64,000 nucleotides of DNA from Macrostomum hystrix (GCA_950097015.1 CATNEN010000001.1:23684001-23748000); one strand, 5' to 3'. Shown: positions 11,226 through 19,710, numbered from the stretch's first letter. Numbers and translations are program-made. The notes: a model not told the origin generated them from the letters alone.

Positions 11226-11287
11226 TCAGTTATATTTCACAAGCTGCTAACGATTTCAACAACGAGGAATTCAATACTGTTCATCAC
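11226..11287 (-). ncRNA. box C/D snoRNA, snR57-like (18S AACGAGGAAUUC guide)
   Basis: Minus strand: GTGATGA...GAATTCCTCGTTG-TTGA(D')...CTGA. The +5 rule selects the G equivalent to yeast Gm1572. Confidence 0.8.
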
Positions 11288-11476
11288 TCGGTTCAATTCA
11301 TCATGAATAAGCGAAAGTTTAAGTTAAAAATAAACTTTTACCGGATTTAGGAAGACGACAAAATAGTTTTTGGATCTTGAATTGAATCTACAAAAATTGA
11401 AAGGCAGAGAATACCAATGTGAAACACTGTAAATAAAGAAAAAGATTGTTTCCTAGAGTTAAAATTTACTTGCAAA

Positions 11477-11538
11477 TCATGGGTGAAATTGTCAATCAAA
11501 AAAGATCTGTTGGATCGCCGTATTAGCATTCTAATCAT
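11477..11538 (-). ncRNA. non-canonical box C/D snoRNA, family B (18S helix-23 region guide)
   Basis: Minus: ATGATTA-GAATGCT..CGGCGATCCAA-CAGA..TTGATTG..TTCACCC-ATGA; conserved in 6 copies. Confidence 0.78.
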
Positions 11539-11727
11539 TTGTAGTAGCCAAACTAACAATGAACCTGTGAAATCGCATGCTTCTCACCTTCAATATAGAA
11601 TTGATTCATTTATCGTCGGGCAAGACAAAATCGCAGCACAGGTTGCCTGAAGTTTTAGAAAAAATTATCTTTCATTAATGCTGTAGATAAAATAGAGGAA
11701 CTGCACTGCAACATTTTCGCATCCAGA

Positions 11728-11789
11728 TCATAGGTGAATTTCTCGATCAGATTTTGAATCTGTTGGATCGCCGTAAGCATTCTAATCAT
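11728..11789 (-). ncRNA. non-canonical box C/D snoRNA, family B
   Basis: Same boxes and guide as 11477; linkers diverged. Confidence 0.78.
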
Positions 11790-11959
11790 TTTGAACCGAT
11801 TGTCAATGGAATTCATTGATTCCATTTTTGATTGTCTAAAATCTACAAGAAGGGTTCAAGACTATGTACTAACGAAAACTGGTATTGTTGCGACTTACAC
11901 GCAAATTTAAGAGAGGCTTGAACAATGCTTGGTTGTTGGTGCGATGCGATGGAGAGTAG

Positions 11960-12115
11960 CGAAGTCACGTGAAGTGTGAGAGGGCGTTGTGCCCTGGACT
12001 ATATATTTAAACATGGTTAAGTTGGACAGACTGGAGGAGGTTGGCGGTACGATAACAAGAGTGCGCGACTGAGGGTAGGAGAGGAGGCTAGAACGTGAGC
12101 GGCGGACCAATCAGA
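11960..12115 (-). promoter_or_regulatory. candidate internal Pol II promoter (TATA-like, CCAAT, E-box)
   Basis: Minus-strand TTTAAATATATAG at ~11999-12011, CCAAT at 12107, CACGTG at 11966. Followed by a GTAAGT donor at 11898 with no obvious acceptor upstream. Confidence 0.4.
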
Positions 12116-12498
12116 AAGGAGGAAAGAGAGAAAGGATAGAGAACTGGACGATGTAAACAATAAAAGTACAGAGAACGAAAGAGTGAATAGAGGACAGAAG
12201 GCAGAGACGAAAGTCGCGACAGGTATCACAATTTGCTGCAATAAGATTACAATAGCTTGTTTCTTAAACAGCAGACAACTGTCTGTTGAAACAAATATTT
12301 TCATGCTTGAGAAACATACTAGATCACTTTGACTAGGATGTTTTAGTGAATTTAAACAATGTGTATTAATTAGGTAAATTGTGTCCTTGAGTAAGAGAAC
12401 ATATTTTTTTAGTGTTTCAGTTCATCCAGCTCTACTGTGGGTACTAGGAATTTAGCTGATTACCAATATAGCTGATTACCAATATAGCTGATTACCAA

Positions 12499-12710
12499 CG
12501 AGGCCACATTCATTTGGGGCGCAGCCGCAGAGAGAAGGCTTGGGGGCTTGTCGTGCAATTTACTCCCTTGAGGGCCAACCTCCAAGGCACAGTGAGAGTG
12601 TACACTGCCTGACAGTGAGAAATTCGGTGCAGTGTATATATTCAAGTGTGTACACACCTGCGTGCGTTTGTGCTGAGGAGTCAGCGGAATGGGCAGAATT
12701 GCCTCCCAGC
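12499..12710 (-). mobile_element. fragment of a dispersed SINE-like repeat
   Basis: Reverse-complement match to ~62415-62572 (ccccaaatgaatgtggcctcg, aaattgcacgacaagccccc). Confidence 0.7.
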
Positions 12711-12910
12711 TCACTAAATAATGCCCTTACCCGCAGCCATCCTGCAACAAATTATATTACACATTCAATAGAATTTACTCACCTAATCGGATATTTTTTC
12801 AGTAGCATCGCAATGTTGATTGAAATCTGTAAATTGTGTAGTTGTAGGAACAAATGCTAATTGCTACTTAAATTCACTAAGGCTGTAATAATCAGAGAAT
12901 TACAGAACAG

Positions 12911-12977
12911 TCATAGGTGAAGTTGTCAATCAAGGTTTAAAGATCTGTTGGATCGCCGAATAAGCATTGTTAATCAT
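12911..12977 (-). ncRNA. non-canonical box C/D snoRNA, family B
   Basis: Plus-strand image tcataggtgaa...tctgttggatcgccg..agcatt..taatcat. Confidence 0.78.
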
Positions 12978-13161
12978 AATGAGCATTTTTATTGTCAAAA
13001 GTAGCTATTGCCATATACTTTACTAACTATATTTAATAACCAAAGCTTGGGCGCTTGCAGTTGGGTAGCCAAATCGAAAAAACTATTAACCAAATCATGA
13101 AAATGATAAGTAATCTCAATTCAGGGCAGTTGCATAATCGTTACAAAATAAAATGGCAAGG

Positions 13162-13200
13162 TCAGTAAAAAGGTAACTGGCTATAACAAAGTCAAGGCCT
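13162..13200 (-). pseudogene. truncated SNORD58-like snoRNA (3' half only)
   Basis: tcagtaaaaaggtaactgg..aaagtca matches the copy at 15597, then breaks at the MITE; no box C found. Confidence 0.65.
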
Positions 13201-13201
13201 T

Positions 13202-16992: not shown

Positions 16993-17064
16993 TCAGCAGA
17001 TAAAGGTAACTTGAAGATAAGTCATTGTTTGACATCAGAAGGTGTCCCAAGGTTTTGTCATCAT
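16993..17064 (-). ncRNA. SNORD58: box C/D snoRNA, SNORD58-like, U-targeting subtype
   Basis: tcag..aaaggtaact...tcagaaggtgtcccaagg...tcatcat. Confidence 0.82.
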
Positions 17065-17228
17065 GTAATTAGATTAACAAACATGTTAAAATGACACTTA
17101 CAAAACTTTTCAGTTGATTTAAGGCACCATGCAGCATAGACACTAAAATAATTATTTAAAAATGACACAAATATCAGGTATTTTCAAACATTATCAGGTA
17201 AAATCAAATAATTGTGAACATTCAAGTA

Positions 17229-17300
17229 TCAGTAAAAGGTAACTGGTTAAGGAGAAGTCATTGACTAACTCAGAGGTGTCCCAAGAACATTTGTCATCAT
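17229..17300 (-). ncRNA. SNORD58: box C/D snoRNA, SNORD58-like, G-targeting subtype
   Basis: tcag..aaaggtaact...tcagaggtgtcccaag...tcatcat. Confidence 0.85.
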
Positions 17301-17731
17301 AACTATAAAAATAAGAACTAACTAAAGCTGACAAAATATATATTCAGCTAAAGGACTTATTAATCATAATGGAGAAATATGAACTAACTGTATAACTAAA
17401 TGCAAAATATATTTCTTTCAACAAATTTACCTTGAATTAACAAGGCCATCGTGCCAATGAGTAGGCGACCGCGTGTGTGAGCTAAAATTTTTAAGGAGAA
17501 ATAAGGCATATAAGAAAAGGAGCAAATAGTTTTCTGTTTTAAAGTACAAATCAAGCAAGTTAAAATAACACACCTGAAAAGTATCTGTCAATGCTGGTGA
17601 TGAGTTTATGGTCTGATAATTGAATGCCGAGATTCTCTGAAAGTTTAATTGTTTGTTACTTATTATATAATAATGTCACTCCAAAAATAATATACAACTC
17701 AAGCAAAAGTAATGTCATTGCCAAGCAAAAA

Positions 17732-17799
17732 TCAGAGAAAGGTAACTAAAATTACAAGTCATAGAATTGACTCAGAGGTGTCCCAAGTTTTGTCATCAC
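17732..17799 (-). ncRNA. SNORD58: box C/D snoRNA, SNORD58-like, G-targeting subtype
   Basis: Same boxes and guide; box C GTGATGA. Confidence 0.85.
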
Positions 17800-18024
17800 A
17801 AGCACTTAGACAAAATATTTGTTATGTCACTTTACTGTCAGTTTGCAATATCTAATAATAATGAATAGCTTAACTGATTCAAGTATTAGAACCATTAACT
17901 TAACTTACTTCTTTAGTCTGTTGAGCGGTTCAGATAGAAATCTGCAAAGAGGAAGTAGAAAACATGAGTCCGTGACAGTATATAAAAATTAATGACGAAA
18001 AACATACTTGAAGACTAGTACTGA

Positions 18025-18084
18025 TCAGAATTTATGAAAATTATGTCACCTTTATTCATAAGGTCTCCAAAGATTAATCATCAT
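18025..18084 (-). ncRNA. box C/D snoRNA, family D (LSU AGGUCUCCAAGG guide)
   Basis: Minus: ATGATGA..CTTTGGAGACCTT-ATGA(D')..GTGACAT(C')..CTGA. Confidence 0.82.
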
Positions 18085-18518
18085 GTAAAAAGGTAAGATT
18101 CTCAAAGTCTATATATATAGCGAAAAAGTTTGAAAACCCTTTTTAGGAACCTACTAGGCTATTGTATGACTATAACCTGAAAAAACATTGACATCAAGCT
18201 ACATGCTTGCATATACTAATACAGAAACTCCATACACTTTCATTGTTTAATATCATCAGGTTTATTATAATATCATTTTGAAACAACCATTGCATTTAAG
18301 TTAAGCAATAAAAATCAGAGAATTAAGTCTTAAATTTCTGAGAACCAAATAGGGAACCAAATATCCAATGAAAAAAACTTACCTAGAGTTGAGGCGTCAA
18401 TACAAATGCTAGCGTTGGACTTGGACATCATTTGCTGTAGCTTAAATTTTGAGACAAAGTTAACACATAAGTCACAAGTTGAGCAAAACTAAATTAGTGA
18501 CAAAACAATGTGTTTAAA

Positions 18519-18590
18519 TCAGATATAAATTATAAGCAATGTCACATTGTCAGTGAACAATCATAAGGTCTCCAAAGTTTTATTCATCAT
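18519..18590 (-). ncRNA. box C/D snoRNA, family D
   Basis: Same boxes and guide. Confidence 0.82.
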
Positions 18591-18793
18591 ATGATAAGTA
18601 AATCAATTCACAATTAAAATATAAAACCATGCAACACACCTGAAAAAATACCTGCCAATGTTAATCTGTCAGTTAAGTGAGAAGACCCTCTGAAAGTTTG
18701 TTTGTAAATAAATTAAATTTATTGAAAATATCATTCTAAAATAATAAAAAGTAAAACCAAATATAAAAGAAAGGTAATTTTTTGTAGTTTAAG

Positions 18794-18865
18794 TCAGATG
18801 AAGGTAACTAATATTACAAGTCATAGTAATATTAGACTCAGAGGTGTCCCAAGTTTTGTCATCAT
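18794..18865 (-). ncRNA. SNORD58: box C/D snoRNA, SNORD58-like, G-targeting subtype
   Basis: Paralog of 17732. Confidence 0.85.
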
Positions 18866-19649
18866 TTTTAGTCCATTTTCAATCCTTTTGAATGATTTAA
18901 CGATGTTATAGTCTAGGGCAATCTTCTAGTTTTGTATGTTCCATTTTTTACAATTTTTTATACTTTTTAAACCCAACTAAAGACAAAACAGTCAGTTATT
19001 ATAGGCCTAATGGTAATGCTCAGACAGCATGGTAGTGTACCAGCCAGAAAGTATATTGCCAAAGATATTGTGTTGGTGGCAGCAAGGCCACAGAAACTTT
19101 AGACATTCAGAAAGTCTGAATGGGTGTTGATTGGATTTATGATCATGGGTTCATTGGCTGCTGTGATTTCACTCGGCTCTTGTGTTGAGAGGTTTAAGAT
19201 GCATAGATCAGCAGCAGGTCATAGGTTTGCAGCAGTGATGATTGCTGTTGGTACTATAAAGTATCTAGCCATGATTGCTCTAGAAACAAGAATCATCTAA
19301 CCCTCTTTTTATCAGCTACCCCTTCTTATATCTTTCTGGTACATCTTCACTATAGATATTTCCATGCATTGCCATAACATTCAAAACTTGTACAAGTTTA
19401 ATTATTTACATATTAACTTAAATAAAGTTTAGAACTTTTGATTAATAAATTATTATATAGTATTAGTACTAAAGGACTACATATTCTACCTTTATTTATA
19501 TATGAAAGTTTCATAAATTTATACTTGACTTACTTTACTGGCCACTATGCACTTTACTTTGGAATCTGCAAAGAGGTAAACAGAATACATGACATTTTTG
19601 TAGAAAAAATTACACAAAAGCAAAAATATTGTATAAAGACTTTAACCAA

Positions 19650-19710
19650 TCAGAAATAATGAAAATGATGTCACAATATATTCATAAGGTCTCCAAAGAT
19701 TATTCATCAT
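19650..19710 (-). ncRNA. box C/D snoRNA, family D
   Basis: Paralog of 18025. Confidence 0.82.

Follow-up and report, generated by a model that had tools for sequence, protein, structure and literature searches.

A tandemly amplified array of predicted intronic box C/D small nucleolar RNAs, with four interleaved guide families, in Macrostomum hystrix

Two kinds of described arrangement come closest to the locus considered here. The first comprises non-coding host genes of box C/D small nucleolar RNAs (snoRNAs), such as vertebrate UHG (SNHG1) and GAS5 and Drosophila dUhg, which have many short, poorly conserved exons, no meaningful open reading frame (ORF), and one box C/D snoRNA per intron, a rule stated as 'one snoRNA per intron' in PMC11028025. 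Their conserved product is the set of snoRNAs rather than the exons. The second comprises tandem intronic box C/D arrays, including SNORD115/116, SNORD113/114, and rat Bsr/RBII-36, in which local tandem amplification, with one box C/D gene in each repeated intron of a non-coding RNA, is accompanied by birth-and-death turnover and the formation of subfamilies; arrays of this type reach hundreds of copies and are, according to PMC11028025, eutherian, imprinted, and made up of orphan snoRNAs, although that review adds that less studied genomes may harbour others. Here, we describe a 64,000-nt stretch of the Macrostomum hystrix genome (GCA_950097015.1, CATNEN010000001.1:23684001-23748000; hereafter the window), whose minus strand carries 22 box C/D units between positions 11226 and 19710. 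This part of the window is very probably a spliced, non-protein-coding snoRNA host gene of the UHG/GAS5/dUhg type, running on the minus strand from ~20.2 kb to ~11.04 kb.

The locus resembles UHG, GAS5, and dUhg in having one unit per predicted intron, short unconserved exons, and, read exon by exon, no coding capacity; here too, the snoRNAs rather than the predicted exons are conserved. While most introns of the vertebrate hosts carry different guides, only four families occupy the 22 predicted introns here, apparently through module duplication. The SNORD115/116-type arrays, with which the locus shares local tandem amplification, birth-and-death turnover, and subfamilies, differ from it in turn, since the present units are canonical ribosomal RNA (rRNA) guides of four interleaved families that number in the tens. 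Both non-coding one-per-intron hosts and tandem intronic box C/D arrays are already known, and the locus is a real, ordinary type of gene in amplified form. Particular to it are the interleaved amplification of canonical guides, the split of a SNORD58-type guide into two registers, a possibly retargeted family, and a kink-turn variant with a compensated base pair.

The interval runs from the C box of the first unit to the D box of the last, exactly as an earlier note on this DNA, made from the sequence alone, had placed it, and all 22 units, measuring 60-83 nt from box C to box D, lie within it. They fall into four families, here called P (nine copies), Q (six), R (four), and S (three), and a recount agreed with these numbers. 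Alignment of each family bore out the reported contrast between conserved boxes and guides and diverged linkers: box and guide blocks are unchanged among copies, and the linkers differ. The guide element, 10-13 nt long, is invariant within each family, being TTGGGACACCT in the nine P copies, CGGCGATCCAACAGA in the six Q copies, GAATTCCTCGTTG in the four R copies, and TTGGAGACCT in the three S copies. Box C conforms to RUGAUGA in 16 of the 22 units, and 15 of those 16 carry a CUGA box D, the other being the copy at 17064 (CUGC). All 22 units show the layout typical of box C/D snoRNAs, in which box C, close to the 5′ terminus, and box D, close to the 3′ terminus, stand 60-90 nt apart. For target assignment, the rRNA genes (rDNA) of the same genome were used (loci L001 and L004), with positions counted from the first base of the Rfam large-subunit (LSU) and small-subunit (SSU) matches; the target nucleotide was taken as the rRNA base opposite guide position 5, counted upstream from box D′ or D (the fifth-nucleotide rule), for an antisense element of at least 10 nt ending 1-2 nt before that box. 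The units are as follows, the higher coordinate of each line being the start of box C.

19650-19710, minus strand: S unit; C box AUGAUGA, D′ guide to LSU 2161-2172, D box CUGA
18794-18865, minus strand: P1 unit (SNORD58-like); D′ guide to LSU G2984, D guide to about LSU A2971
18519-18590, minus strand: S unit with a 12-nt internal insertion
18025-18084, minus strand: S unit; Rfam scores below gathering level for SNORD58 (22.4 bits) and snoR10 (26.3 bits)
17732-17799, minus strand: P1 unit, by guide and family alignment
17229-17300, minus strand: P1 unit, by guide and family alignment
16996-17064, minus strand: P2 unit, probably decaying; D box CUGC, no exon before the next unit
16602-16684, minus strand: P1 unit, recent duplicate of 15597-15679
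16371-16435, minus strand: Q unit; C box AUGAUUA, D box AUGA, D′ guide to SSU 923-933
16113-16189, minus strand: P2 unit; additional U before D′, giving target LSU U2983
15847-15912, minus strand: R unit (snR57-like); D′ guide to SSU G1584
15597-15679, minus strand: P1 unit, by guide and family alignment
15366-15430, minus strand: Q unit, by guide and family alignment
15109-15185, minus strand: P2 unit, by guide and family alignment
14872-14938, minus strand: R unit, by guide and family alignment
14575-14638, minus strand: Q unit, by guide and family alignment
14316-14397, minus strand: P2 unit; weak Rfam match to Me28S-Gm3113 (24.5 bits)
14062-14126, minus strand: R unit, by guide and family alignment
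12911-12977, minus strand: Q unit, by guide and family alignment
11728-11789, minus strand: Q unit, by guide and family alignment
11477-11538, minus strand: Q unit, by guide and family alignment
11226-11304, minus strand: R unit; C box starting at 11287 by alignment with its paralogues, and a second AUGAUGA starting at 11304

In every copy, a perfect 10-13-nt antisense match to the organism's own rRNA abuts the D′ box. The earlier note had made such complementarity one of the tests of its interpretation, and the perfect matches lie at the position set by the box C/D rule. The P guide (CUUGGGACACCU, followed by a canonical CUGA) pairs with LSU 2980-2991/2992. The count of nine SNORD58-like copies given previously stands, with the refinement that they comprise two specificities. 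In five copies (P1), the guide abuts D′ and its position 5 falls on LSU G2984; in four (P2), one additional U before D′ places position 5 on the adjacent LSU U2983. A second P guide, AGUUACCUU, precedes box D, is invariant in all nine copies, and pairs with LSU 2968-2977, only 3 nt from the D′ target; it points to LSU A2971, or to A2970 in two copies.

The 12-nt P guide equals the Rfam consensus of Me28S-Gm3113 exactly and differs by one base from that of SNORD58, a change that mirrors a C/U difference in the rRNA, and the SNORD58-like label is well founded in this respect. P aims at the G of AGGUGUCC, an LSU domain VI-proximal sequence, and its predicted target lies in the same sequence context as that of SNORD58; the corresponding human nucleotide is G4198, an equivalence for LSU G2984 that rests on the family consensus and on PMC9616492, in which human 28S G4198 is guided by SNORD58A. 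Both U4197 and G4198 are methylated in human (PMC10657414), and a 2016 RiboMeth-seq reassessment listed U4197 as firmly methylated with its guide unassigned (PMC5027482). Outside the D′ guide, P departs from both known families: the remainder of the RNA is unalignable, the invariant D guide is absent from both consensus sequences, and the family is split into two registers. P and S score 19-22.4 bits against SNORD58 (RF00151), and P scores 19.5-24.5 bits against snoMe28S-Gm3113 (RF00531), short of the gathering scores of 42 and 70, respectively; the low scores of P arise because only the guide aligns. Judged by its predicted pairing, P works like SNORD58, yet it fails Rfam membership.

The R guide (GAAUUCCUCGUU-G-UUGA) pairs with SSU 1581-1592, and its position 5 falls on SSU G1584. 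SSU 1581-1587 reads AACGAGG, and the predicted target is the G directly after ..AAC, with the second G of GAGG standing 3 nt further on, as in yeast G1572/G1575, which agrees with the snR57-like label of the earlier note. In yeast, the sequence ..CAAC(1571) G1572 .. G1575 is the context of the snR57 site G1572 and of m7G1575 (PMC2275143), and R would place its methylation on the equivalent G, before AGG, as yeast snR57 does at 18S Gm1572. Unlike snR57, R gives no Rfam match to any snR57 family, its D′ box is UUGA, and alignment of its four copies contains no conserved second guide. Pairing of the Q guide (CGGCGAUCCAA-CAGA) with SSU 923-933 places its target at SSU A927; a weaker D guide pairs with the directly adjacent SSU 912-922, pointing to G916, or alternatively with LSU 2310-2322, pointing to LSU G2314. 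The S guide (CUUUGGAGACCU-U-AUGA) pairs with LSU 2161-2172 and points to LSU U2164. Neither the Q nor the S target, nor that of the P D guide, was matched to a described human or yeast site. A further block, GAAUGCU, lies just past box C of Q (window 16418-16428), is invariant in all six copies, and is kept even in a decayed one.

The significance of these antisense matches was assessed with an ungapped scoring scan of the units against rRNA, compared with shuffles, in which the Q D′ block outscored 30 of 30 shuffles. On the minus strand of the 9 kb, 33 of 43 rRNA-antisense 11-mers fall inside the 1.5 kb occupied by units. Across the 220 Mb genome, a representative unit or C-box-plus-guide patterns matched only here (nine P, six Q, four R, and three S), with zero or one match for control patterns. 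The 11-mer enrichment and this genome-wide restriction together place the array well beyond chance. A relaxed P-guide pattern returned four additional genomic matches, against two for control patterns. Two of the four, at C1:9.86 Mb, were rejected as snoRNAs, as they lie 78 nt apart in a ~20-nt minisatellite and have no C boxes; the remaining two, each an isolated site on another contig, show a third spacer variant. The array is the only detectable source of these guides in the 220 Mb. Two metagenome scans with the Q and P guide patterns gave no match.

Family Q carries AUGAUUA in place of RUGAUGA and AUGA in place of CUGA in all six copies. Stem II of the box C/D kink-turn contains a base pair between the sixth position of box C and the first of box D. 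The G6-C1 pair of stem II is accordingly U6-A1 in Q, a double change that preserves pairing and argues for a real folded motif. The change is a single inherited event rather than repeated covariation.

The units occur in a repeated order. The module P1-Q-P2-R is found at 16684-16435-16189-15912 and again at 15679-15430-15185-14938, followed by a partial module at 14638-14397-14126; the 5′ part of the array holds S and P1, and the 3′ part holds Q, Q, and R. Identity is still 96-99% across one tandem duplication of 1005 bp (repeat families D2, D7, D12, and D13). The array would have grown by repeated tandem duplication of this ~1 kb four-unit module, with the last duplication very recent. The previously described period of ~250 bp in the dense parts holds in 13900-16700, where introns measure 199-231 nt and exons 36-80 nt. 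Birth-and-death turnover probably left one damaged copy, transposon hits, and relics; three relics were identified where the earlier note had counted two. The 9 kb is largely AT-rich, as had been stated, although not uniformly so, as two GC-rich blocks (11900-12760 and 13200-13880) represent dispersed-repeat insertions within introns. The relics and repeats are listed below.

19845-19909, minus strand: P-like relic, decayed; box C AUGAUGC, guides lost
~16820-16890, minus strand: Q-like relic, decayed; boxes and guide broken
13158-13195, minus strand: P1-like 3′ half, truncated beside a dispersed-repeat insertion
13200-13621, no strand assigned: young dispersed repeat in an intron; at least 340 candidate genome copies, those scored being 97-98% identical
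11900-12760, no strand assigned: older dispersed repeats, composite, in an intron; at least 2750 candidate genome copies, those scored being 77-89% identical

The young element at 13200-13621 (~420 bp) was probably active recently and adjoins the P copy that is reduced to its 3′ half.

Three relics, a damaged D box, and transposon insertions would also be expected of a silent or dying tandem repeat of snoRNA pseudogenes without present function. This explanation has scarcely any probability, as guides and boxes stayed invariant while flanks of the same age fell to 32-48% identity, the copies are the only ones of these guides in the 220 Mb, and one of the guides is aimed at a site that yeast and this animal have in common. 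Across paralogous modules, the units retain 75-94% identity; between the old ones, identity is 75-89% in units, 32-46% in introns, and 24-48% in exons. Conserved units among freely diverging exons and introns are the signature of a host gene whose functional output is intronic.

Splice signals are confined to one strand. On its minus strand, the 9 kb holds 16 copies of the donor-like motif GTRAGT, and on its plus strand none, compared with a mean of 4.2 and a maximum of 11 in shuffles. The exon model was built from donors and pyrimidine-rich acceptors read from the splice consensus, partly by eye, and then refined; it comprises 22 predicted internal exons of 32-80 nt and a last exon, as follows.

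19804-19743, 19565-19534, 18689-18652, 18440-18383, 17941-17909, 17636-17574, 17481-17431, minus strand: predicted internal exons by splice consensus (first part of 19)
17142-17102, 16523-16483, 16283-16242, 16018-15977, 15768-15730, 15520-15478, minus strand: predicted internal exons by splice consensus (second part of 19)
15278-15237, 15033-14996, 14792-14713, 14481-14446, 14231-14181, 13969-13907, minus strand: predicted internal exons by splice consensus (third part of 19)
12826-12783, 11646-11588, 11387-11342, minus strand: three further predicted exons by splice consensus
11035-11169, minus strand: predicted last exon; acceptor at 11170, AATAAA at 11057-11052

The statement that neighbouring units are generally separated by a tiny exon fits this model, in which 20 of the 21 pairs of adjacent units have a predicted exon between them and only 17064/16684 does not. 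In that pair, the D box of the P2 copy is CUGC, a donor stands 3 nt after an acceptor, and a Q relic lies between the units; these three features give the pair the look of a decaying module. In 20 of the 22 units, 74-104 nt separate box D from the predicted acceptor, and the interval between donor and box C varies from 32 to 993 nt. As Hirose and Steitz reportedly found in 2001, intronic box C/D snoRNAs whose processing depends on splicing are recognizable by a fixed position ~70-80 nt before the 3′ splice site.

Other eukaryotes are known to group paralogous box C/D genes in polycistronic clusters. Real snoRNAs might likewise be cut here from an unspliced polycistronic precursor, much as happens in plants, trypanosomes, and certain yeast clusters, with the 'tiny exons' as mere spacers, an arrangement to which the regular spacing and the units without terminal stems would be suited. 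We consider this very improbable, given the one-sided distribution of GTRAGT, the donor and pyrimidine-rich acceptor that bracket nearly every unit, and the asymmetry between a fixed D-to-acceptor and a free donor-to-C distance, which marks splicing-dependent processing.

For the spliced host gene, an exon-by-exon reading test found no consistent frame, and one exon is closed in all three frames. Individual predicted exons encode only 10-26 residues. The claim of a one-per-intron layout in a non-coding host is upheld by the strand-specific splice signals, the fixed D-to-acceptor spacing, the unconserved exons, and the inconsistent frames.

Downstream of the array on the same strand lies an intact, intronless ORF of 183 aa at 9105-9656 (minus), a member of the Arf family (Pfam PF00025, 1.9e-80). 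It lies 1.4 kb past the predicted end of the host gene with no gene between, and a 3′ splice-like ..caatacag stands ~30 nt before its start codon. The snoRNAs could accordingly be real while the exons form a giant spliced 5′ leader of this ARF gene or belong to the upstream member of an operon trans-spliced together with it. Such a linkage is unlikely: the predicted last exon contains AATAAA (11057-11052) and is followed by no GTRAG donor, and a 1.15 kb minisatellite with a 32-nt period (~9810-10985) parts the two genes. This minisatellite has ~36 copies of a unit like GTGAGGTTCGCAGTGAGGTGTGAAGTGTCTAA on the minus strand. The ..caatacag before the Arf ATG might itself serve spliced-leader trans-splicing.

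Several results weigh against a host gene of this type with these guides. In the window, Rfam at gathering score returned a U5 small nuclear RNA (snRNA) as its sole match and no snoRNA family, and the best sub-threshold scores of the units are 19-26 bits against gathering cut-offs of 42-70. Terminal stems of 4-5 bp at the C/D flanks are not evident, as the best helix averages 3.3 bp, compared with 3.05 bp for mismatched flanks, and a helix of at least 4 bp occurs in six of 22 units against 28% of controls. A terminal stem is, however, absent from many intronic animal snoRNAs and hence is no strict defining trait. The spacing statistic is perhaps flattered, because the exons were picked out by eye from consensus motifs before the model was refined. 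The longest stop-free chain of exons extends for 378 nt over nine exons, longer than most shuffles, with a length matched by 10 of 2000; it contains no Met inside exons, its frame differs between the two members of each of two recently duplicated exon pairs, and its length is not taken as coding evidence. Taken alone, the D guides of P and Q have no significance against shuffles; they gain weight because they are adjacent to the D′ target. The rRNA match of the Q GAAUGCU block is likewise not significant, with 29 of 30 shuffles scoring as high. Finally, the exact target is uncertain by one position for Q, R, and S, a consequence of their degenerate D′ boxes (CAGA, UUGA, and AUGA).

From the sequence signals described above, we infer the following course of expression for the host gene. 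RNA polymerase II would transcribe it, and splicing would join the exons of 32-80 nt. The ribonucleoprotein would assemble on the C/D kink-turn ~75-100 nt upstream of the 3′ splice site, and the excised intron, once debranched, would be cut back by exonucleases as far as the box C/D particle. The mature RNAs of 60-83 nt are predicted to direct fibrillarin to 2′-O-methylate rRNA: P1 at LSU G2984 (the SNORD58/Me28S-Gm3113 site), P2 at LSU U2983, both through their D guide at about LSU A2971, R at SSU G1584 (the yeast snR57 site), Q at SSU A927 and more weakly at SSU G916 or LSU G2314, and S at LSU U2164. Amplification of dosage for a few rRNA sites, as the earlier note suggested, is plausible.

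More tentatively, and with somewhat less than even confidence, we read the array as a record of guide evolution by duplication, in which the P1/P2 register split, a retargeting of S, and the Q kink-turn variant are combined. A single-U insertion before D′ would have split a SNORD58-type guide into P1 and P2, both being maintained in each P1-Q-P2-R module. If true, each of two adjacent methylations has a dedicated guide, the human counterpart of the second being 28S U4197. The S guide is a few bases from that of P and pairs with a look-alike rRNA sequence (AGGUCUCCAAGG vs AGGUGUCCCAAG), which would suit a P copy retargeted to a new site. Q would work with U-A in place of G-C in kink-turn stem II.

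For annotation, the locus adds 22 predicted snoRNA genes and one long non-coding host, all missed by Rfam thresholds. It also yields testable lophotrochozoan rRNA methylation sites, at LSU 2164, 2971, 2983, and 2984 and at SSU 916, 927, and 1584. Tandem intronic box C/D amplification, best known from mammalian imprinted orphan arrays, appears to shape ordinary rRNA guides here too. The array may further be regarded as a compact natural experiment on three counts: two registers of one guide aimed at adjacent bases, a copy that may have been retargeted, and a kink-turn variant in which the base-pair change is compensated. Because it is the sole genomic source of its guides, deleting or silencing the locus would test the purpose of these methylations.

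Several other features of the window were noted. A GC-rich ORF of 191 aa without a Pfam match lies at 20942-21517 (plus strand), ~700 bp upstream of the presumed host start and divergent from it; it may share a bidirectional promoter region with the host gene. Other rRNA-antisense 12-21-mers in the window were rejected as snoRNAs, being satellites or lacking boxes. Within GC-rich sequence, 62013-62033 (plus strand) is a perfect 21-nt antisense match to the internal transcribed spacer (ITS) of the rDNA (214-234 of the ITS/5.8S segment); it carries no snoRNA boxes and is too long for chance. Window positions 1-950 form a satellite with a 20-nt period and strong GC skew, which holds a 12-mer antisense to the ITS by coincidence and inflates naive rRNA-antisense counts. 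A U5 spliceosomal snRNA gene lies at 27081-27196 on the plus strand, matching RF00020 over its full length with 78.5 bits.

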